A stretch of DNA of 64,000 bases from Entomortierella parvispora E1425 (taxonomy: Eukaryota; Fungi; Mortierellomycota), in assembly GCA_020891255.1 (NCBI GenBank), contig BQFW01000009.1:1426001-1490000 (forward strand), in the 5' to 3' direction. This document shows, one piece after another, positions 7,441 through 21,092 of this stretch (its first letter is position 1; each line of letters opens with the position of its first letter). The position numbers and the translations under genes are program-made. The notes beneath the pieces are model-generated. The model saw only the letters and a program-made list of their open reading frames with translations, made no database searches and was not told the origin of the DNA.

Positions 7441-7680
7441 ACAAGTCTTAAATATCGCTGATTCAGGGAATGAGAAAAGAGCGTAGTTGGGCAGCATGGT
7501 GCACGAGCCAAGCATCTAAAAAAAAAAAGTTGCCCCCGAAAATAAAAACGCCACCAATTTCTCGATCCTCCCTTCGCCCCATTTTCAAGAAATGACATCT
7601 TTGAATGCAACTTCATTTTCTCACTTTCCGACCATTAGCATCTGCCTGCTTCGTGATCATCGACAAACATACACTTCTTC

Positions 7681-8360
7681 ATGTCAGAGCAACAATGCCT
7701 TGAAAGGCTGCCGCGTGGTCGACCGCAACATGAGCCACGACGACAGGAGGAACGATTGGATGTTCTTTTACCTTAAAGTCCACTTGCAGTGCAAGAAATC
7801 TTGGAGTTGATTGGCAACTAGTCCCATCTCCACTTATTTGGCGTCCTTCAGGATTCGCGTGCTGAGGATGGATTGATGCGAATGCGTGACGCCAGCCATA
7901 GTACCGGATAGTCTACTCGATCTCCAGTCTGGAGGTCTTTTGCAGCCAACCATCTCACGGACCTGACCATTCAGGAGGACCCTCGGCCTTGGGTCTGTAC
8001 AGGCTTGAGACGACTGACGGTCATGTTTCAGTCTCGTGTCGGGTACTGCAGGCGAAGGTCTGATCCTGGATCGAGTCGGTCAGCTGGAAAGTCTCGAGAG
8101 GTTATGTTTACCTACGGCTCTGAACCGATTTCTGGGAGGAAGCCCTCAAATCCATGGATTTGCGATTCCAACTAAAGAGTGGTCTGGACAAGTTAAAAGT
8201 CGTTGAGACGTCTGAAGTTTTTTTCAACTGGGAGGGGAGATCAGTTGTGGCGAGAACGCGAAGCGCGGGTGCGGTGGGCGCTCGAGAACCGGGTCCAGCT
8301 GAGAGCCATCGATATCAAATTGGATGTCAAAGCCAGGGAGCTGTTACGCCATCGATTGAC
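7681..8360 (+). pseudogene. Degenerate F-box/LRR paralog with a large internal deletion
   Basis: Begins MSEQQCLERLPRGRPQHEP (cf. copy 3 MPRQQCLEGLQRGRPQHEP), then stops. Jumps to EDPRPWVCTGL and a C-terminal WALEN..QLRAIDIKLD segment with frameshifts. Confidence 0.75.
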
Positions 8361-9060
8361 GGACAGGACCAACCTCTAAGGTACTTTTTTTTTTTTTTTT
8401 GAACTAGACGATCGAGAACCTATCAATGAGAACCATTTGATCGTTTTGCTTTATCCCTTTGAGGCTCCTATCGGATTATTTGTTTTTGGTCTGCTGTGAT
8501 CGCCCTCCATCCAAATGAAAGAGTTACAGCTCTGCTGAAGCGCGTCTTGATTTTTTTTTTTTTTGTGTATTTATTTGTAGGAACTGATTTTACAATGGTA
8601 AAGGCATTAATGAAAAGTGTGGATGTGTTGGGTGTGTTTGTGTTTGTATGTGAAATGATGAAGTGGGGGTTATTGAAACAAGCAAAGGGCAAAAGAGAAA
8701 AGAGCAAAGGAAAAGGCGAAGGCGAAGGGGTCGGGAGAAGAATGGCAGAGAGAAAAGAAAAAAGAAAAAACAATGTCGTAACGGAGGAAGAGTGGAAGAG
8801 GGGGTTTTTTTTGTTGGATGGTGATGTCGATGATGATGACGGGTGATGACAGTGACGATGGTGACGACAAGTGAACGACGACAAAAACGATGAAAGGGAC
8901 ATTCATTCTCCTTTCCTTCGTTTATCGCATCAAGACAAGCAAGATGAAAAGGGCAGGCGAAAGGTAATGTGGCAAAAAAAAAAAAAAAAAAAAAAAAAAG
9001 GTGAAAGGGAATGAGAGAAAAAAAACACAGGGGAAGGTGAAAAGAAGATTTTCAATTCTT

Positions 9061-12000
9061 TCAGGCAATGGGTGGCGACAGAGTGACAATCAAATCACCC
9101 ACATCCTCCACATCGATCTGCTCCGTTGCCTGATGCAGCTCACCCATGGCACTGGCCATCTAGAACCAAGAAACGGAAAAAGAACAAAAATCCCCAGCGC
9201 GTTAGCAAAACATGAACGAGGGAGAGAGCAAAACGGAGCACATTGCGCGCGCTCCTGTTTGGGGCGCGAATTTGCTCTCTTTGAGCTTCTGTTTTTTTTC
9301 CTTGCTTGGCTTAGCTCATCTCAACTTACCCATCCTAGCGTTTTGGAATCAATTGTCTTCTCTGCCAGCACTTCCCGTACTGATGGGGCCTTGACAGAAT
9401 TGCCCGCAGAGGAGACTGTGGATTTCAACCCATTACCGGAGGACCCCAAGGTGGTGGCATCAAAATCGATAGGGATATCGGCACCGGCTTTTACGACTGA
9501 GGTCATACTGTGTAATTTCTTGATTGTTTGTTCGGGTAACTTGACCGTGTTCAATGCAGAGATGTACTCGTTGGATCGATTCTGAGCTTCTTGCTGTTGA
9601 AGTCGTTCCAATTGCAATGTAGAGGGGATATCAATCAAGTTTCTGGAGGAATAGTTGTTGTCAAGAGAGAGAAATAGATAGATAGAGAGCGTGAGTGAGT
9701 GTCGGCAAGAGAATGAGAAAAGGAAAGAAGAGAAAGAAAGGGAAGAAAAAGAAGACGAAGTGAAGTACAAGAAATAAAGGAGGGACCAAGCACAAACAAA
9801 ACAAGGGATCGGTGGCAAGGTCAAAACAAAAAACACCAATCGTAGGCAAGTTTTGAGGTGGGACGAGTTGGTCGTTGCGCGTAAATTGTCTTTGGAAAGG
9901 TGAAGGGACGTGGGTGCACAACCGGAGGGAGGAGAGGGAAGCTATATTTATAGCGATACCACAATCATTATTGCTGCCTTCGCCTTCAGTCCTGTAGGGT
10001 CGCTGTTCTCGCTGCTCCAATACCCCATAGAGTCAAGAATTGGAAGTGGTCAAGACAAAAGGGAACAAGAATCGAGACAAAAGAGAAAAAGAAAAGGCAC
10101 CTGCTGTAACAAAGATAAAACCAACGGAGGAGATCGCAGTACGATACCCCATGGAAAAAGACATTGTAATCCGCTTCCCATCTTCGATCAGCGAAAAGGC
10201 CAATCGCAACATATGCCGGGCACACACACACTGACACGCAAGCGAGCTCAAAGAAGCAGTCGAGGGTCGAGAGCCGACATCAATTACACGATTGAATACA
10301 GACTGGGGGAGAAGCTTGCCCTAGTTCACATTACAAGGGATCAAGTCCGGCGCTGACCGTTTACTAATTCTACCCGCACCCGGGCCAATTGCTTTGCGGG
10401 ATCTTCAAACAACAATACAAAAAAAGAAATGAAAATGGACAGAGTCCAAAAGATTGCGCTTATCTTGGGATGTACCATGATCCATGGACATGGTCCGTCC
10501 GTCCTCCACCTAGACAAACAGTGGTCGGCGACTATCCCCTTTGTTACTGCAATATCTGATCACCCATAACAATCATGCATTGCATCCACCAACAGCGCAA
10601 GTCCGCATGCAAAAAGTAAGGAACCCAAGCCCCCAATTGGTCCTGGTCAGTGCTGAGCACATTTCTCGCTCACCTCCCGTTGGAGGAGGCAAAGAAGGGG
10701 AAACAAAGGAAGGGGGCAGGGAAGGAGGGAGGGAAGAAAAAGTCGCGACGTTGCAAATGCACCCACTGCAACCACACTCAAGCAAGGATGGAGGAGAGGA
10801 CGGAACGGGATTCGAACGCGCAATTTCACACACCCCTAACGCCGAGTTTCGAAATGGAAACCTTTGTGTTTGCTCTTTGCAAGAAATGCCAACTGCGGCT
10901 GCATGTGTTGCCCTCCCGTGCTAGAATCTACGAGTGGTAAGGTATGTTCTGCACCAGCCGACTTTTGACATTCCGACACCTCTCGCCCCCTCCCTCTCAC
11001 TGCACAACAGAAACACGAAGGTCTTCGCAATTGCCCAGGAACGTACACAGAAACAACAAGAAAAATAGTCCCTCACGAAAATGCACGCCCAGGTACTGAG
11101 ACCACGTAAAGATGTTTCGGTACATCCAAATGAAGAGGCGGAGAGGCGGAGAAGTGAAAGGCATGAGATCTCATGGGAAACGAAAGAAAGACTTACCCTG
11201 CTGTCCTCTCGACGATGCGCTGTAATGACTCGAGCTCTCGTACTTGGTTCTGCTCACCCATCGGTGAAGGGATCATTCGGTTTGCCCTAAAAGATATTGT
11301 TTTTCCGCAAGAGAGAGTAACAGCGCGCAGATGTTAGCATTCATATAGGGTCAGCATCCCCAAGCTTTGAAGAAATAAAGTAGGTTAGGGAATGGACAGC
11401 TGGTTGATCACGGTGGCAAAACTTCAAGGGCTTGGCGAATTCGCCGAAGTATGTAGGTCAGGTAGCCCGCAGCACAAGGGTACCCTTGTCTGCACATGTA
11501 AACAATCATTCCCGCCAAAAAAAAACCCCCCCTCTCCAATGTTGACAGCATCAGCAGGGCAGATGTCAAGTCGACGGTTCGTCATTTGTCCTCCCCTCCT
11601 CGTCGTCCGCTCATCAAACTAAGAGTCGTGTCAATACCCCCACCTCAGTAGCCCACTCGTAGGATTCCACTTGAAAAGAAAAAGAACAGTAAACAAGAAA
11701 AGAAGGAGGGAAATCAATTGCCGTTGTTACTCTCGCTCCTACAACCAAACCGCGGAGAACAGGAGTACAGGGGGGATGAGCAAACACAGAACGCTTGCTA
11801 TTGGCGATAAACAGCCGTTGGTGCATTATTGTTTTGCTCAGCAGTTTGGTAAGATAGCCGTCTACAGAATATGGACCAGGAGTTGGAGCTCTTTTCATTA
11901 TGCAAGAACAATTGGTCCATAAAATCGACAGATAAAAAGAAAGAAAAAACAAGGCCAAACAAGGCACAGCATGGAACTTTTTTCAAACAGTGGTGGTGTC

Positions 12001-13083
12001 ATTTCTCCCAATGGCCTGACAATGCAAGGACGCGCGGATTCGCAAGGTGCGCGCCGTGTGTCGATTATCGAGAATGCAGGATAACGCCACTGTGTCCACT
12101 GAAAGAAAATGAGAAAAGCTCACAGCCCGACCCTCGATCTTCACCCTCCCCTGGATGGTGCACCCGAACGGCAGCAAGAGATGAAAATGATAAAGGATGT
12201 TGCCATATTTGACCATGACACAAAACGAACCCACGCTCCCCCTCCAGCGGAAACGTAACCCTGCGCTCACTTGTTCGACTTGAGCTCTCATTTTTTTTGT
12301 GCTTTTTCGCTCACTCTTTTTTGGTCGAGGGACTTTGCAATTGTGGGATGCCGTGGAGATGAGGGGATGATTGTCGCGCTTTGAATTCCAAAATAACAAC
12401 ACACAATAGTAAAGACTCTGGGACTAGCCGCGAAACAGTAGGACCCATTGGCCACCATGACAAAAGAAACAGCCCCTTTCCTTCGGACACACTAGAACAG
12501 TAACGCATTTCTTTTTGGATTTACCCATATGGATTCACATCGTTGTTCTCGATCAAGAGTCGTGTCCGTTCCTCCTACAACGCGATAGAATAAGTGCGGG
12601 ATCCGATCGAATTGAAATAAACAAGAGAGAAAGAGAGAGAGCATTAGTCAGACGTTCTGCATCCAAGCAGAGGCCATGGCCCCATCAAAAATAAACTAGG
12701 TGATAGGCGAGAGAGCCGTAGGCGGAGTGCTCCATGAATGATAGGGTGGTAATGAAGGATTAGGATAGGACAGGGACCGATCACACTAAAATTGAGGCAC
12801 AGGTAGGAAGGATAGGTGCTCCTAACGGGGGTGTCATGTCGATGGATGGTTTGTGCATGGTTTGTGTGCTGCATGGTTGCATCGCCATGGAAGGAGGTTG
12901 AAGCTAGGCCAGTTGAATGTCGAGGGGGGGGGAGGACAGTTCACCCTTGACCGAGCAAGGGAAGAGAGTCTGTGCGAGGAAGGAGGAGGGGGAGGGGTGA
13001 TGAGCGAATGAAGGGAAGGGGGGGGGGAGGGAGGAGTGACCTACCTCGTTCTGATCAGCGTGTTTGCTTCCACAGCAGCCCAT
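9061..13083 (-). CDS. LAMTOR1: LAMTOR1/Meh1(Ego1)-like Ragulator/EGO scaffold subunit, 196 aa, 5 exons
   Basis: Exons 13083-13045, 12574-12525, 11286-11197, 9642-9330, 9159-9061, all GT-AG with matching phases. Product has MGCCGS (myristoyl/palmitoyl motif), EERTRLL (acidic dileucine), RELESLQRIVERTAGNLIDI and C-terminal QIDVEDVGDLIVTL, as in the LAMTOR family. Confidence 0.85.
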
Positions 13084-13476
13084 GGTTGTGTATGAGTATA
13101 GAGTGTATATGGAGAGACGGGAGAATGAATAGAGATGAAGTAGGACAGAAGGAAAGAAGGAAAGAAGGAAAGAAGGAAAGAAGAAGGGAAAAATGAGAGC
13201 AAGGGGAAACAAAGAAGGAACGAGAGAGAGATGTCGATGCAACAACAAGAGATGCCAAGAAGGAAAGAACGAAGGGAATGAAGGAAAGGAATGAAGGAAA
13301 GGAATGAAGGAACGAAAAGAAAATGAAAATGAAAATGAAAATGAAAGCGAAGCGGGGATGTAAATGAGCAAAGAGAGACGGGGTGGAGAGTGGACAGACA
13401 GAGAGAGACACAGACACAGAGAGAGACAGCGGGCGAAGGCGGGTTTGGTTTTCTTCTGTGTGTCTCAAAAGGGGAG

Positions 13477-13485
13477 GGGGGGGGA
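13477..13485. repeat. Left target-site duplication GGGGGGGGA
   Basis: Identical 9-mer immediately outside both TIRs (13477-13485 and 21084-21092). Confidence 0.85.
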
Positions 13486-14506
13486 GAAGCTCTGAACCCA
13501 GCCCCTCTTTGCTCACTCCTTCACTTCAGAGGGGCTGGGCGCAAATCTCACCCTTTCCTATGGATGACCCAAAATAATTTTTTCGTCCAAAAAAGGAAAA
13601 AAAATTCTCTGATAAATAGTGTAATTTAAAAACTTTAAATAAATTCACTCTAATAATAATAAAATAGTGAGAGTAATGCCAGCCATGCAGCCATGCCATC
13701 GCTCGTCGCCCGGCTTGAATGGGGTTAATTTCTTCCATTTTTTCATTTTCAATGCCACCACTTTCTTTCATAAACCCCGCGTTCCGATCTTGCATTCAGC
13801 TCCTGCCACCTCTTCTTTATACCCTTCATCTGATTAAATGACAAAGATGGCAAGCAAAAGACCAATCGAGCAGAGGTGAGGAGACGCGTCTCGGGTGTCC
13901 ATGATGCTCAGAGTCGCCCACGCGTCCATCTGCTCTATTTTTCTTCATCTCTTCATATTTTCTGTTGTAGTCATGATGCTCTTAGCAAATCTGATCAAGA
14001 TATCCCGGGAACGCCGAGAAGATCGCGTAGCACCAAGGTGAGTAGCTTGATGTGGTGCCTGGTGGCCTCTTCCTGGTGTGGCCTCTTCTAACTCTGTGAT
14101 TTACAATAGGGTGAGGGACGATTTCGTCTTGATTCCCCAGGTGCTCCTCCGCGAACCCCGCAAACAACACAAACCCCACGAGCACCACGAGCACCACGAA
14201 CTCCACGAACCCCGCGCACCTCACAAACCTTACAAACGCCAAGATTCATACAGTCACCAATTGTGGCCAACCAAGTATGAAAAAAATCGTTAAAAAATAT
14301 GTGCTGCTCGCGTTTTCTTTTCTAACAGATGTATCCACCTCCTCCCATTCATATCGATTAGGGAACTACCAATGGTTCTGGTGCTACCGATATGGCCCAA
14401 CCTTTACCCTTTGTCATGGAGGCACAGGCTCTTTCTCCGACTTCTCAGGCTGCGTACATTGGAGGATCAACGCAATTCAACATTGGAAAAAATTCGACGC
14501 CACCCA
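13486..14506 (+). repeat. Left terminal inverted repeat (1,021 bp)
   Basis: Starts GAAGCTCTGAACCCAGCCCCTCT. All mirrored ORFs in the track sum to 34569 with identical translations. Identity ends at ...AATTCGACGCCACCCA (14506). Confidence 0.95.
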
Positions 14507-16755
14507 TCACTGGAGAAGAACCGCCACGACTCAATGTTGGAGAGAATTTGACGCGATCCAATGTTGGAGAAGAATCGCCGCGACCCAGCAATGCGTCGGA
14601 GGAGTTGACGTTCGATCCTTTCTGTGATAACACTGATGGAGAACCAATCATGACGTGGGGTTCTGATAACTATTATGTAAGAACCCCTTTGAGGAAAAAG
14701 TGGTCATCGATGCAGCCATCGTCATCAGCTCCTTCTTCACCCGCCAATTCTGTCGGCTCTCCGTTGCAGTCATTCTCGTCACCATCAAATGCGGTTCTTA
14801 GCCAACCTTTACCGTTTATACAAAAAAGCGATGAACGCGAAGACGAGAGTGATGTCCAGGTAAGTCGAGTTTAATTATGAAATGGCGATGTTCTGGACTT
14901 GCATTAACTCTCACATTAAAATGCATATATGTCTGTAATCTTCATACTGCAGGATCCATTATGTAAAGAGGCTATTCAAGCTTGCCGAAAGCGTTTTCAT
15001 CACTCACCAAAGGAGGAGCAGCTTCGTGTTGTCAAACATATATACAACAAGCAGGATTGCTTACTGCTTGCGCCCTGCGGGTGGGGAAAAACACTTGTAT
15101 TTTCTCTGCCAATGGTGATGTGGAAGGACAAGATTACGGTCGTCATTTCGCCGTTGATTGCCCTGATGCAGGATCAGATAAAGGTATGCCAGCATACAAT
15201 ATACCAGTCTAACAGGTATACTTTTTTCTAACATATCGCGCAATGCGACCCTGTGTTAATACTCTAGAAACTCAAAGAAAAGGATGTCACTTGTTTGCTA
15301 CTCTCGACCTACAACGGCAATCGAGTTAACGACAGTGACATTAAATTAGTTAAGGAGGGACATTACAGAGCTGTGTTCATGTCGCCAGAAGTCATTTTCG
15401 GGAAAGGATCTACTGCATGCAAGGTTCAGGACCTTTGGAACAATAAGTATTGGAAAAGTCAACTATGCTCCATCGTCGTAGATGAAGTCCACTGTGTAGA
15501 TAAATGGAAAGATTTTCGGCCGTATTATTCGCAAATTGGATCATTGCGTGGTAAGGTACCTGGGGTGCCGATCGTAGGCCTGACTGCAACCCTCCCACCC
15601 GATTCGCTCCAGGAAATCAAGAATAGCGTCTTTTCTCGCCTCGTCCACCGTTCATGTCATTCGTGTGGATGACATTCGTGATAACATCCAGCTCGAAGTT
15701 CATACCTTTTCACTAAGGAATCGAGTCAGACAACTGGCGAAGTTGCTGGACAATACAAAGACGATTGTCTATTTTGACAGCATCGCACTTCTCAGAGATG
15801 TACAGGACAAGTTAAGGCCATTGAGGCCTGATCTGCGAATGGACGCATTTTTCTCAACCCGCCTTAGTTCTTCCAAGGATAAAGTCCTGCTCAAGTTCAT
15901 TAATAGCGAGATTGATGTCCTGTTGGCTACTGATGCCTGCGGCATGGGATGCGATATCTCAGATGTTATCACTGTGTTCCAATATGAGTAAGTTGAAACG
16001 TAACTAAGGTTGGACAATGCGGATGAAATGAGAGACGATCTTACTTACTTCAAGATATTTTCAATGATATGAAGTCTGCCTCACGATTTGACGAGTCTTG
16101 TGCAGAGGTTCGGTCGAGCAGCGAGGGGTCCTGGAACTAAAGGCTTTGGGATCCTCTTGGCGCCTCCAACTACCAGCAGGAAATACAACAAGAGACCTGA
16201 CATCTTAAATTTCGTTGCCCCCCAATTGACAAGGACAAGGACAAGGAAAAGGACAAGGAAAAGGACAAGGACAACAGTCGGAGGAAATGTCGGTGGCATG
16301 TGGTGGATGAATATCTAGGGAACAAAATATCCTCTCGTACCAAATGTTGTGATGTATGTCTCGGTGAGTCTTGTCGCCGCAAGACGACCGAACTTACTGG
16401 TCAAATTGGGCCCGAACTGACTATACCAAAGGGGAAGAGCGCGGACAAAGATCAGGATGTAGGGAGGAACAGGTTATTGGAGTGGAGGAAGAACGAGTGC
16501 AAAAAATGGACAGGAGAAGAAGTGTCCTTCGTGGACTTCGAGCTTTGCGTTTTGCCCGATAAAGTACTCGCAAGGTTGTGCTACAAGCTCTTTGCGGCCA
16601 CCACTACTGAAATGGTGAGGTTGATAGCTGACAGCTGTGATTTTGTGCCAGTGGATTGCGATCATTTTGAAATGATCGCTGAGGTTGTGGCGAAAGCCCT
16701 GGGCGAGATAGAAAGTACGAAAAATGATCAAAATTCCTTGGTAGTCGAAGAATAG
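13838..16755 (+). CDS. Transposon-encoded RecQ-like SF2 helicase (~800 aa after correcting two homopolymer frameshifts)
   Basis: Exons 13838-13875, 13971-14037, 14110-14274, 14362-14859, 14953-15183, 15268-15987, 16075-16755. Motifs APCGWGKT, DEVH, TAT, ATDACGMGCD, QRFGRAAR, Zn-like CRW..CCDVC, and an HRDC-like tail (LLEWRKNE..VLPDKVL). Frameshifts at T4 15631-34 and C6 16218-23. Confidence 0.85.
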
Positions 16756-16921
16756 CCCATCAATTGACCGAGCCAAGATGACAAGGAGATGGAGTCACTG
16801 CTTGCATCTGATGACCCTGCACAACCAAACATTTACAGCCGGCCGGGCCATTTAACATCGCACGAGCCCAGGTCCCATTCATTCATTCTTCTTTAGTTAG
16901 TATTATTATTGTCATAAAATA

Positions 16922-19900
16922 TCATTCAGCTACAACATGGTCGTTGGCCTCGACTTCCTCCATATCCACAGTATCGTAGCTATCGCTTTTTCTGAGAAAA
17001 CATGCTATAGCACTCTCTGCCATTTTGTGCGCGCCAACAGTTTGAAGGTCAACTACCACGGATGGAGAAGGCCGAGTGTCTTGCTTGGATGCCCAAAGGA
17101 TTCCACAGAACTGGAGATTGTCTCTGACAAGCTCAACATCCTCTTTCGTGGATGGTTTTTTGTGAGCAGTGCTGTTGTACTTGGTTTCTATCTCCCGTTC
17201 GAAATTACGTGCAATGGTTTGAAATATCTCGACGTTTGTTGAGATTTGTTCGCGAAGATAGTCCCAGCTTGCGTTTGGCCCTTTCGCTGCATGAGTGGCT
17301 TTGAGGAGGAAGTTGATGATTTCTTGGTACATGTCCGTTGGCATCCATGCTTGAGGAATGCCTTTAGGGTTCACCAGCATGCTTGAAAGGACCCTGTGTT
17401 CCCATTCACGCGTCCACAGGTGGCGCATGCCGTGGAGAAATCGTAGTAGCTCAAGGGCATATTTGAATTGCCTCCGCCGTGCATCATCAATGCCACGGTT
17501 GGTAGCACACATCTTATCCGCCCAAGATCGCCAGCCTTAATAGCAGCAGAGAGTTCGATGAAAACGATCATGTCTCGGAGGAAGAGAAGAGCATTGATAT
17601 CTGCTGGAGTGCAGGGCCGGCCATTGAGCAAGGGATTGGCATGCTGCAGACTAGCTATGGCGTAAATGACAAGATCAACGAATCTTGTCATGTCAGACTC
17701 CACTGAGGTATGAAGATCTTCCCAGAGTACCATTGACATTGCGTCGAAAACAATCTTCAGCAGTTCACTGGTTGGCTTGTACTCCGGTTTATCCGTGTTA
17801 AAGCCTTTACTGGCCAATAGGGAAATGAATGATGCAAGTGAGCCTGGGGTATTGGCATCGGCGCCAAGATGTGTCTTGTAGATCGTGGAGCAAAGTGTCA
17901 TTTGGAGATGGAAGAGCTGAAACGTAGGATGTACCCAACCAAGACTGCCGAATGGATCCGACTCAACCATGCGGTGTACCTTGAGAGATAAAAGTCTAGA
18001 GACAGTCATCTGATCACCGGCCACTATGATGTCCCTGGTGGTCTTGCTGAACCATTCATCGCTTAAGCCGAGATCTATCTTTGTTATGTTTTCCAGCACT
18101 GCGAGATTTCCGGCAATAGTCGACTCATCGATCTTCATGGTTGGCAATGGAAAAGTTTTCGTCTTAACAACCTTCAGTACGTCAATGGCCGGCATGGGAA
18201 TCACGCAAACACTGGGTGATCGAGGCAAAAACTGCGAAATGGCAGTCGACAGATGTGTGCGGCAGGCAGCCCTAGTCATGGTGCGGTCGGTGCTTGTGGG
18301 GAAAAAAATGCTGGCGCTTGGCTCTGGCCTGTCCACTCTGAAGCAAACCATTGGGGATGATCGAGGTATTTCAGCACTCCTGGAGCTCCCGAGATTTGAG
18401 CTGTCGGGAATCAGAATCACGGTAGCAGCTGTGCCGTTGTCGAACGTGTCTCTTTTTCCTACTCTCTGGTGATGGTGCCTTGTGGCAATGTTGATGTTGT
18501 CGTATACAATGTAAAAGTCGTTGTTGAGGACTGCCACCTTCACCCTCTCCTGTGCGTCTTTGGTCAAGGCCTTCAATGCCCTGTGAATCTGATCATATGA
18601 CACGCAAAGTCCAAGAGCCGACAAAGTCTCTAAAACTCGTCTGGGAGCTCCCAGGCAGTGAAGATAGATGCCCATTACCATCTGAAAAGCATTGCATTGC
18701 TGGGATCTCAAGAACATGAGCATAGCAGAGATGCAGCCACGAACAGAGCTGGGTTTTTCGACCGCGCCTGCGAGCAGGTGTAGCGCTTCCCACAGTTTCT
18801 TCATCATTGTTGCCGATGTTGTCACTGCCGTTGTTGACGGTGTTATCGCCGTTGCTGTCGATGTCGTTGTCGCCGCTATTGTCGCTGTTGTCGCTGTTGC
18901 TCTCGGTGTCGTTCTCACTGTCGTTGCCGTTGTTGTTGCCTTCGTTTACTCTGGTGCTACCATCGCCACTGTTCGTACCATTTCCCTTGCTAAGCATGCC
19001 GTCCAAAAGTCGTGTCAAAAAAGAAGCTTCGCCGGCGTAAGAGTCGAGAAACCCGTTCCTGAGGATCTTATCGATATTTTCCTCCGACATTCTATTGTGC
19101 GGGAATCGGTAGGCTGGGTGTGGGCCATCGTCACCTACGACGCCGTTCTTGAGGCGATCAAGCTCCCGTTTAGTCCTTGAGACAACGACGTCTACAGCGC
19201 TGTTCACAAATGGGGCATCCCATTCTTTGATCTTGCGTAACTTTTGGCTCCAAATTTTGATAACGCGACGAGGACCGTCTTTGTGATAGAATTGATGAGT
19301 CCAGCGCTTGATGTTTTCATCTTGAGAGTTAAACAGCTTCTCGAAGAAGGCGGGAAGTGAAAGCTGTTGTTCCCTGATGTAGTTAAGAATCATTGCAACT
19401 TTGTGGGTAGAGGAATGCTAAAAAGAAAAATAATTGTTAGACGCCTGTGGGAGTGACATATTGCTGGTTTCTTTGGACAACCGGTCTTCACATACATGCG
19501 GCTTCCTTGTTGATCCGGGCATTCGATCCTCTCCATTGGTCGCTCTGAGTGTGGGGGGAATCGGGCATGCACATCTATACGTAATTCGTAATTCACTTGA
19601 GAGGTAATTCATAAATTACGATAAGGATGTTTTCGAAACCATGTGCTGAATTTACCTGCAGTGTCGATGAGTTGAACTGCTCCTCCATGTCGGCCGTTAA
19701 AGTCCTAATCCTATCACTGAATTTCACTGCATGTTAGAAATTTGCGTAAACCTGGGGGCAACTAAAGTTGCGACAGGGTAGGCAGGTTGGGGTATCTCAT
19801 GCTTACGCGAACTGAGGGGTGCTCAGATTCCTAGATCGTCGCGAGTTTTTTCTTGTGGGGGTCCTCATGTAATCGTTCCCAGAAACCCATATCATCGGCG

Positions 19901-20731
19901 TCTCTGTTCGATTACTTCCTAATCTCCGAAGCCAGAATGGGCTATCGAATGGCTCTCCATCAGTGTTGTCACAGAAAGGATCGAGCAGAGACTCCTCTGA
20001 CGCATGCTTGGGTCGCGGTGATTCATCTCCAATGCTGGGTCGCGGCGACTCTTTTCCAATGTTGGGTGGCGTCGAATTTTTTCCAATGTTGAATTGCGTT
20101 GATCCTCCAATGTACGCAGCCTGAGAAGTCGGAGAAAGAGCCTGTGCCTCCATGACAAAGGGTAAAGGTTGGGCCATATCGGTAGCACCAGAACCATTGG
20201 TAGTTCCCTAATCGATATGAATGGGAGGAGGTGGATACATCTGTTAGAAAAGAAAACGCGAGCAGCACATATTTTTTAACGATTTTTTTCATACTTGGTT
20301 GGCCACAATTGGTGACTGTATGAATCTTGGCGTTTGTAAGGTTTGTGAGGTGCGCGGGGTTCGTGGAGTTCGTGGTGCTCGTGGTGCTCGTGGGGTTTGT
20401 GTTGTTTGCGGGGTTCGCGGAGGAGCACCTGGGGAATCAAGACGAAATCGTCCCTCACCCTATTGTAAATCACAGAGTTAGAAGAGGCCACACCAGGAAG
20501 AGGCCACCAGGCACCACATCAAGCTACTCACCTTGGTGCTACGCGATCTTCTCGGCGTTCCCGGGATATCTTGATCAGATTTGCTAAGAGCATCATGACT
20601 ACAACAGAAAATATGAAGAGATGAAGAAAAATAGAGCAGATGGACGCGTGGGCGACTCTGAGCATCATGGACACCCGAGACGCGTCTCCTCACCTCTGCT
20701 CGATTGGTCTTTTGCTTGCCATCTTTGTCAT
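16922..20731 (-). CDS. Academ-type (DUF6589-like) DDE transposase (~1,080 aa after correcting two frameshifts)
   Basis: Core 19417-16922 with motifs SQQCNAFQ, VYDNIN, AGDQMT, FHLQM, AIKAGDLGR, Y-ALELL, LVNPKG..MPTDMYQEIIN. Upstream exons 20731-20694, 20598-20532, 20459-20295, 20207-19807, 19574-19496; the last junctions are less certain. Frameshifts near 18754-58 and 17462-64. Confidence 0.8.
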
Positions 20732-21083
20732 TTAATCAGATGAAGGGTATAAAGAAGAGGTGGCAGGAGCTGAATGCAAGATCGGAACGCGGGGTTTATG
20801 AAAGAAAGTGGTGGCATTGAAAATGAAAAAATGGAAGAAATTAACCCCATTCAAGCCGGGCGACGAGCGATGGCATGGCTGCATGGCTGGCATTACTCTC
20901 ACTATTTTATTATTATTAGAGTGAATTTATTTAAAGTTTTTAAATTACACTATTTATCAGAGAATTTTTTTTCCTTTTTTGGACGAAAAAATTATTTTGG
21001 GTCATCCATAGGAAAGGGTGAGATTTGCGCCCAGCCCCTCTGAAGTGAAGGAGTGAGCAAAGAGGGGCTGGGTTCAGAGCTTC
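20063..21083 (-). repeat. Right terminal inverted repeat (1,021 bp)
   Basis: Reverse complement of 13486-14506. No differences in the segments I compared. Confidence 0.95.
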
Positions 21084-21092
21084 GGGGGGGGA
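21084..21092. repeat. Right target-site duplication GGGGGGGGA
   Basis: Follows ...GAGCTTC, the end of the TIR, directly. Confidence 0.85.

Follow-up and report, generated by a model that had tools for sequence, protein, structure and literature searches.

The DNA analysed here, which we call the window, is a stretch of 64 000 nucleotides (nt) of Entomortierella parvispora E1425 (GenBank assembly GCA_020891255.1, contig BQFW01000009.1, positions 1,426,001 to 1,490,000 of the forward strand). At 13486-21083 it contains a 7598-nt element with an exact 9-bp duplication, GGGGGGGGA, on both sides and with two convergent genes, i.e. a helicase gene on the forward strand and a gene for a DUF6589 transposase on the reverse strand, whose stops lie at 16755 and 16922. 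Probably, the element is an AcademH-like cut-and-paste transposon, present in several copies and active until recently, in which both genes are transcribed from within identical terminal inverted repeats (TIRs) of about 1 kb, a start codon borne by the TIR giving both proteins the same N-terminus. A sequence-only reading of the window had proposed just this, namely that the TIR doubles as a 5′ module of the genes, present twice and providing one and the same start for two enzymes. The proposal is now supported by spliced RNA contigs, by the intact frame of a second copy of the element (L008), by the GenBank gene models and by four further lineages of Mortierellaceae in which the architecture recurs.

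Exons carried by the inverted repeat arms

The inverted repeat pairs 13486-14561 with 20008-21083 (1076 nt) and has 17 mismatches, all of them within 14507-14561; over the outer 1021 nt (13486-14506 = 21083-20063) the arms are letter-perfect. Besides tip boxes and a putative promoter, the perfect part of the left TIR holds a 5′ untranslated region (5′UTR), an ATG, exons 1-3 of the helicase gene and 145 nt from the start of exon 4. The left-arm exons that had been drawn from the letters (Table 1) do form, on recomputation, an open frame interrupted by GT-AG introns of 95, 72 and 87 nt with the phases proposed; the CTAAC branch boxes seen in two of the TIR introns are present in introns 2 and 3, and the mirror exons of the right arm hold as well. 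The two conceptual proteins are identical over exactly 138 residues, as had been predicted.

Past the repeat, the junction 14859/14953 predicted for the helicase agrees with a GenBank model (P0068) and with a shortfall of 177 nt (93 + 84) in an RNA contig, which is described below. For the transposase, the predicted route stood only in part: the intron 19495-19418 is real and the donor at 19806 is used, but according to RNA this donor is joined to 19716 and not to 19574. Instead of a single 232-nt intron there are two, 19717-19806 and 19575-19655, around a 61-nt exon (19716-19656) that had been missed. The frame claimed for this route was nevertheless right, because 61 + 78 − 79 = 60 (the true length of exon 6 is 78 nt, and the window shows 79, with an extra G at 19553).

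The GenBank models P0068 (EMPS_06832, helicase) and P0074 (EMPS_07069, DUF6589) both start with MTKMASKRP; their residues 1-138 are identical, and some 50 further residues are similar but diverged. In the shared 138 residues, S, T, P, G, Q and R make up 62% and hydrophobic residues 16%, and the net charge is +10. S/T-P sites number ten, and there are two clusters of basic residues, KR at 7 and RRSR at 29. The shared module is most likely intrinsically disordered; a role in nuclear import or in phospho-regulation is a guess.

Table 1. Features of the element and of its insertion site (positions in the window)
Feature	Positions	Strand	Support
Target-site duplication, left copy, GGGGGGGGA	13477-13485		identical 9 letters at 21084-21092
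Left TIR, perfect part, 1021 nt	13486-14506	+	0 mismatches to 21083-20063
TIR tip boxes: ACCCAGCCCCTC (13496-13507) and complement GAGGGGCTGGG (13529-13539)	13496-13539		mirror 21062-21073, 21030-21040
AT-rich stretch, putative core promoter	13570-13670	+	sequence reading; mirror 20899-20999
Helicase exon 1, ATG 13838	13838-13875	+	GenBank model; mirror joint in RNA
Helicase exon 2, ends ...TPRRSRSTK, phase 0	13971-14037	+	motif and phase conserved in L001, L010
Helicase exon 3, TP/PR-rich, ends ...QSPIVANQ	14110-14274	+	GenBank model; homology
Helicase exon 4, across the perfect-TIR boundary 14506/14507	14362-14859	+	GenBank model; RNA contig from ~14477 into the gene
Diverged arm continuation, helicase side	14507-14700	+	compared with 20062-19870
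Helicase exons 5-7: 14953-15183, 15268-15987, 16075-16755 (with stop)	14953-16755	+	Pfam, RNA, P0068
Transposase last exon, DUF6589 core, stop 16922-16924	16922-19417	−	Pfam PF20231
Transposase exon 6, ends with STRK basic motif	19496-19574	−	RNA joints 19417>19496, 19574>19656
Transposase exon 5, 61 nt	19656-19716	−	RNA joints 19574>19656, 19716>19807
Transposase exon 4, across the perfect-TIR boundary 20063/20062	19807-20207	−	RNA record 7, unbroken from 19417 through joints to 20092
Transposase exons 3, 2, 1: 20459-20295, 20598-20532, 20731-20694	20295-20731	−	mirror of helicase exons; RNA record 8
Right TIR, perfect part	20063-21083	−	mirror of 13486-14506
Target-site duplication, right copy	21084-21092		same 9 letters as 13477-13485

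Spliced transcripts from the repeats

The E1425 genome was assembled from Nanopore reads (SMARTdenovo, Nanopolish, Pilon), and AUGUSTUS was given the mapped reads of a TruSeq RNA library, which came from the same strain cured of its endobacterium (PMC8759367). A search of RNA runs with the element sequence listed no run. The element is present in two runs of one sample, X1 and X2: X1 is a DNA run, and X2, tentatively labelled ‘DNA?’, was read as RNA-derived since its contigs are without introns.

The X2 contigs skip all three TIR introns (20599-20693, 20460-20531 and 20208-20294) as well as 19418-19495. On the reverse strand their joints are 19417>19496, 19574>19656, 19716>19807, 20206>20294, 20458>20531 and 20598>20694 (CT..AC, i.e. 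GT..AG on that strand); on the forward strand there is one, 15987>16075 (GT..AG), which corresponds to removal of the helicase intron 15988-16074. One contig (record 8, 463 nt) consists of the spliced TIR exons 1-4 and reaches 20779, 48 nt upstream of the ATG; beyond its end, X2 depth continues to about 20922. Another one (record 7, 5102 nt), spliced over its whole length, overlaps each perfect TIR by 30 nt, its right end being at 20092. Between 14477 and 15499 it has 846 nt as compared to 1023 in the window, the missing 177 nt being the sum of two introns of 93 and 84 nt; this arithmetic, together with the model P0068, supports the helicase introns 14860-14952 and 15184-15267. Transcripts starting downstream of the TIRs and a lack of spliced reads for the TIR introns, the two outcomes named beforehand as contrary to the shared 5′ module, were not seen.

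Frame breaks in the window copy

Compared with its homologues, the window copy has four apparent frameshifts, two per gene, on which the sequence-only reading had been silent: 15631, a C-run at 16218-16223, 17464 and 18754. These breaks, and the ease with which in-frame GT-AG paths arise by chance, are what one would expect if the element were a dead copy with fortuitous frames, or if errors of assembly or annotation mimicked shared exons. The breaks are, however, 1-nt length differences in a Nanopore-based assembly, in which copies of the element differ by 0 substitutions. The X1 DNA contig over 15500-20092 has 0 substitutions and 5 single-base gaps relative to the window, those listed being 15631, 18754 and 19553. 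Introns apart, X2 too departs from the window in 1-nt indels only and shows 0 substitutions. Of the four frame breaks, those at 15631 and 18754 are on the list of 1-nt differences between the window and the Illumina DNA and RNA contigs, and the X2 pieces have spans in keeping with +1, +1 and −1 within 16075-19417. Three of the breaks do not occur in the copy L008: it is free of those at 15631 and 18754, and at 17464 it has the base that the window lacks. It is also free of the error at 19553. The C-run error is present in all three assembled copies, the extra C being deduced from contig gap arithmetic alone.

With exon 5 and the correction of the G-run at 19553, the transposase frame is open from the TIR ATG; without the correction it is closed. 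When the RNA-defined exons are applied to L008, they give a frame of 3306 nt, i.e. 1101 amino acids (aa) with a single terminal stop, which equals the GenBank model in span (11084-14892) and in length. As the introns are also removed in the RNA contigs, we take the explanation by artefacts to be refuted and its probability to be negligible. A pseudogene was likewise rejected, the four breaks having been shown or deduced to be 1-nt assembly differences.

Single-base errors in the window lie mostly in short homopolymers (15222, 15631, 16218-16223, 17464, 18754, 19553, 20631 and 20633). In some copies such errors break both genes, and truncated GenBank models of 653, 615 and 934 aa result. P0068 has only 653 aa because the C-run error ends the same exon chain early; the corrected helicase product has 799 aa.

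The same layout in related lineages

Three kinds of evidence were used to establish the layout: RNA, exact match to the lengths of public models, and homologous intron positions. In Linnemannia elongata (L010), the TIRs are 998 nt long and 100% identical, with a 9-bp duplication. An annotated transposase of 1169 aa, which has a helicase neighbour, starts at 15692 inside the TIR; exons placed by homology to E. parvispora reproduce the 1169 aa with a single stop, and the same TIR exons are in frame with the annotated helicase start. In Podila humilis (L003; TIRs of 900 nt, 100% identity), it is the helicase model that starts at a TIR ATG, 16037 (the sequence of this 839-aa model was not recovered), and the mirror ATG at 8982 opens, with homologous introns, a frame of 910 aa into the transposase. 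A relative from a soil metagenome (L001), with 71% identity in the transposase, has homologous exons 1-4. The TIRs of Gamsiella (L007) are shorter, 429 nt, and without introns: an ATG and 17 shared codons are in frame with both genes. In P. verticillata, a contig (L005) has both ends within the repeat, which form a 55-nt inverted repeat, and the same frame.

Exon 1 measures 23 nt in three lineages and 38 nt in E. parvispora. Across the lineages with introns the phases 2, 0, 0 are conserved, exon 2 ends in basic residues of the type TPRR[SA]R and exon 3 in QSP-x-[IV]; the branch region of intron 2, TCTAACTCTGTGAT, is common to E. parvispora and P. humilis. The exon before the last N-terminal intron of the transposase ends in a STRK-like motif in all lineages, so that conservation of the coding sequence extends upstream beyond the first core methionine. 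The peptide of this exon (exon 6) is conserved in P0004, L003, L004 and L010.

Two observations concern incomplete copies. The L. gamsii copy (L004) is truncated: it has a full arm on the helicase side (7537-8455, tip at 8455), whereas of the arm next to the transposase no more than the inner 250 nt are left (1937-2186). In short-read assemblies of Mortierellaceae (the contigs of P0003-P0013 and others), the element interior appears as contigs of about 5.3-5.5 kb that end in the repeat, and both genes are consequently annotated as ‘partial’.

Divergence at the inner edge of the arms

When gaps are allowed, weaker homology between the arms continues to about 14649/19947, with 27 gap positions that amount to nine codons. 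Both continuations contain the motifs DPFCDNTDGEP and W-x-S-x-N-x-Y-x-RTP-x-RK. Aligned as protein and compared by codon, they give a nonsynonymous divergence (dN) of 0.36 and a synonymous divergence (dS) of 0.85, i.e. a dN/dS of about 0.43 in a small sample of 68 codons, with all gaps being whole codons. A dN lower than dS and gaps of whole codons would fit translation of both arms. Directly where the perfect TIR ends on its inner side, a tandem array of 27-nt units begins in both arms (9 aa, NVGE-like; 14511-14587 and 20008-20091), and the helicase side has one unit more than the transposase side.

The perfection of the arms in three genera, TIR interiors that cannot be aligned between families and the sharp boundary with sequence of dS ~0.85 suggest that the arms are repeatedly homogenised, by some mechanism, in a process that is probably ongoing.

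Probable use of the repeat-borne exons and start codon

Several points weigh against a shared, repeat-borne start. The X2 contigs carry neither strand nor 5′-end information, and since the arms are identical, the contig of exons 1-4 is not assignable to one gene. Its word depth is 112 and the interior has 79; the two values are not equal, nor is the first the sum, and they decide nothing. The GenBank models come from AUGUSTUS with RNA; as the reads behind them are also those of the X2 contigs, they do not count as independent evidence. For species without RNA, the mere existence of an in-frame GT-AG path is weak evidence because a loose search finds such routes easily: our own path finder returned nothing with strict sites and implausible minimal paths with loose ones. 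In three relatives, annotators began one gene at a downstream methionine (P0026, P0040, P0071). For the shared module, Pfam returned no hit and the ESM Atlas no useful neighbour; it evolves fast, short motifs alone being common to the families, which would agree with weak constraint on much of its length. Lastly, that each of the two genes uses exons 1-3 and that translation begins at the TIR-borne AUG are inferences.

The contig that cannot be placed on either arm could mean that one gene alone, e.g. that of the helicase, uses TIR exons 1-3, transcripts of the other starting within exon 4 and the mirror exons being silent; a depth of the TIR-exon contig well under twice that of the interior would agree with this. 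But more than 1 kb of identical DNA, promoter included, should drive both arms alike, and the ends of the RNA contigs reach both perfect TIRs. Moreover, the frame continues into both genes in every lineage examined, and a silent arm has no reason to keep such continuity. Use of these exons by a single gene is thus very unlikely.

Another possibility is that the TIR provides no more than a promoter and a long spliced leader, the proteins starting at downstream methionines (MILNYIREQ at 19393 for the transposase, a position near the core for the helicase). The annotators' choice of such a methionine for one gene in P. humilis, Gamsiella and L. elongata is in line with it, as are the low complexity of the shared module, with no domain match, and the weak context of the first ATG at 13838 (T at −3). 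Yet a second in-frame ATG only 9 nt on, at 13847, has a better context (A at −3, G at +4), and in the RNA-supported mRNA the full frame of 1101 or 799 codons begins at the first AUG. In five lineages an open frame leads from the TIR AUG to both genes, across up to six introns with conserved phases; the exon directly before the core methionine is conserved as protein (the STRK motif), and the diverged continuation of the arms has dN < dS and only whole-codon gaps. We therefore consider starts at downstream methionines improbable.

A probable shared 5′ module and its possible meaning

According to the reading that we prefer, i.e. a 5′ module used by both genes, each arm would be a cassette of promoter, leader and start from which the genes are read inward, as in MuDR. 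Every repeat would carry about 120 nt of conserved tip (with boxes presumed to bind the transposase or to form a hairpin), then a promoter, the 5′UTR, the first AUG, three exons and 145 nt of a fourth one. Past the repeat, the frame would continue through one more intron to the helicase core and through three more to that of the transposase. With ordinary cap-dependent scanning from the first AUG, both proteins would start with the same 138 residues. Such a module would serve common expression, and perhaps also nuclear import or phospho-regulation.

By having the 5′ ends of its genes inside the TIRs, a two-gene transposon would obtain one promoter, one leader and one N-terminal module for both of its proteins without alternative splicing, and the evolution of both N-termini would be tied to whatever keeps the arms identical. 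This organisation would also explain why gene callers produce ‘hypothetical proteins’ with identical starts in Mortierellaceae genomes, and why these genes break at about 5.4 kb in short-read assemblies.

At this stage we can only speculate further. It is conceivable, though we would not count on it, that the repeat-encoded N-terminus is a functional tag shared by the two proteins (e.g. for nuclear import or phospho-regulated assembly) and that the arms are kept identical by copying tied to the chemistry of transposition. The perfect arms in three genera with TIR interiors that cannot be aligned between families, the knife-edge boundary at 14506 beside sequence of dS ~0.85 and the conserved exon phases would fit. 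If there is such a tag, the helicase and the transposase would be delivered together and in step; if there is such a copying step, anything within about 1 kb of the end would be forced onto both genes, a new constraint that would link maintenance of the ends to protein architecture.

Tips of the repeats

As DNA, only the first ~116 nt of the TIR can be aligned between families. The tip boxes are the sole blocks conserved across all 7 aligned lineages (alignment A1). They have the form ACCCAGCC(C)CTC followed, at a spacing of 20-60 nt, by the reverse complement GAGGGGCTGGG, and the two may fold into a hairpin or serve as a pair of binding sites. Pairing extends further in L004 and L006, where different letters are involved (CTCGTCAGC / GCTGACGAG). 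The AT-rich stretch at 13570-13670, which precedes the transcribed part, would be the core promoter.

On the outermost ~120 nt of the TIR (20964-21083; mirror 13486-13605), X2 RNA word depth is 176-208, which is above exon depth, and loose contig ends at 20959 run into unrelated sequence. Other loci, or short derivatives with the same tip, seem to be transcribed.

Insertion, copies and strains

Exact 9-bp duplications flank five independent insertions, i.e. the window copy, L008, L009, L003 and L010. L008 and L009 are two more copies in the E1425 assembly; the window copy differs from them by 0 substitutions and by 4 and 6 single-base indels, respectively. In X1, word depth is 839 for the element interior and 1627 for the TIR. 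Taking a genome coverage of about 100-124×, estimated from the read and genome totals in PMC8759367, the interior depth points to about 7-9 copies in the E1425 genome. The element is absent from the runs of other strains under the same species label (X3, X4, X9 and X10); matches there are limited to the GACAAG microsatellite mentioned below and to one related TIR tip (in X9), with no transcript evidence in these runs. Identical copies with clean duplications, missing from other strains and expressed in vegetative mycelium, indicate a young and probably active transposon family. It would offer a tractable, expressed and apparently intact AcademH element, in about 7-9 copies, for studies on the mechanism of the superfamily.

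The gap between the two convergent stops (16755-16922) is 165 nt, and one RNA contig crosses both stops. The 3′ ends of the two genes abut or overlap, and double-stranded RNA could arise from them.

The two enzymes

The helicase has a RecQ-like core of superfamily 2 (SF2), followed by a family-specific C-terminal domain. With P0068, Pfam reports DEAD (2e-23) and Helicase_C (1e-16), and outside the family the next-best relatives are RecQ helicases. An exhaustive protein search with the C-terminal domain returned fragments only; a protein search with P0058 gave 4 hits. A GACAAG microsatellite at 16228-16274 encodes a DK/EK run and draws spurious read matches from other strains. In L001 (~5423), L004 (~7120) and L005, the homologue of intron 14860-14952 has a GC-AG donor (GCAAGT), and in L. 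gamsii it is apparently because of this donor that the helicase is annotated as two separate gene models.

The transposase is 71% identical to Podila proteins, and its relatives all belong to Mortierellaceae. An AlphaFold model of one relative, P0001, built from 25 relatives, has a predicted local distance difference test score (pLDDT) of 70, and above 85 in the core. Aligned with known DDE transposases by VIA-align, the core of this model (residues ~230-735) scores Z 10 with Hermes, 9.2 with the P element and 8.9 with Tn5; with ISCth4, Transib and RAG1, Z is 6-7. Conserved acidic residues lie in YDNIN, GDQ and QEN. At the level of the predicted fold, the DUF6589 protein is a DDE transposase of RNase H-like type into which a helical domain is inserted. 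An array with a 45-nt period at 18827-18940 encodes an N/D/S-rich run.

Relation to known elements

The AcademH lineage of the Academ superfamily was defined by Kojima (2020, Mob DNA 11:15, as cited in PMC10045372 and PMC10799480). Its target-site duplication is 9 or 10 bp, that of AcademX being 3-4 bp (PMC10045372), and Academ has been reported in Mortierella elongata (PMC5751038). Like AcademH, the element combines TIRs, a DDE transposase, an SF2 (RecQ-like) helicase and duplications of 9-10 bp, and AcademH occurs in fungi including Mucoromycota. The label fits because the 9-bp duplications of five insertions match the rule of 9-10 bp; it is given by duplication, TIRs, SF2 helicase and DDE fold, and we speak of an AcademH-like element. 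In Pfam the transposase matches DUF6589 alone, with no match to MULE or Mutator families. In the literature that we searched, which did not include the defining AcademH paper, we found no AcademH TIRs with coding exons common to both genes. Nor did we find any transposon with a TIR-encoded multi-exon N-terminus common to two enzymes, though a mention in the defining paper is possible.

Three further known systems invite comparison, one of them being MuDR. Its two genes are convergent, and its TIRs of about 0.2 kb give promoter and transcript 5′ ends. They are not known to encode a multi-exon N-terminus for both MURA and MURB. The likeness would lie in two convergent genes read inward from the TIRs: in the element, X2 contigs reach both TIRs, and the TIR-exon contig, which fits either of the identical arms, extends 48 nt upstream of the ATG. 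The differences are a transposase of DUF6589 type, not MULE, and a helicase as the partner gene. The comparison with TIR-borne promoters that had been drawn from the letters is apt, since the TIRs of maize MuDR (Mutator superfamily) do hold the promoters of mudrA and mudrB (PMC10401008).

Duplicated ends with coding content also have a counterpart outside transposons, which differs in what is duplicated: whole genes there, and in the element a 5′ module alone, which read-through and splicing join to the bodies of two unrelated enzymes. The counterpart is found in the inverted terminal repeats of linear viruses and plasmids (e.g. the genes in poxvirus repeats), where the repeat is diploid, is kept identical and has its contents present twice. 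Finally, TnpA and TnpD of En/Spm (CACTA) are two proteins that share 5′ sequence and promoter by alternative splicing of one transcript, whereas in the element the sharing would come about through two transcripts begun in two copies of the same DNA.

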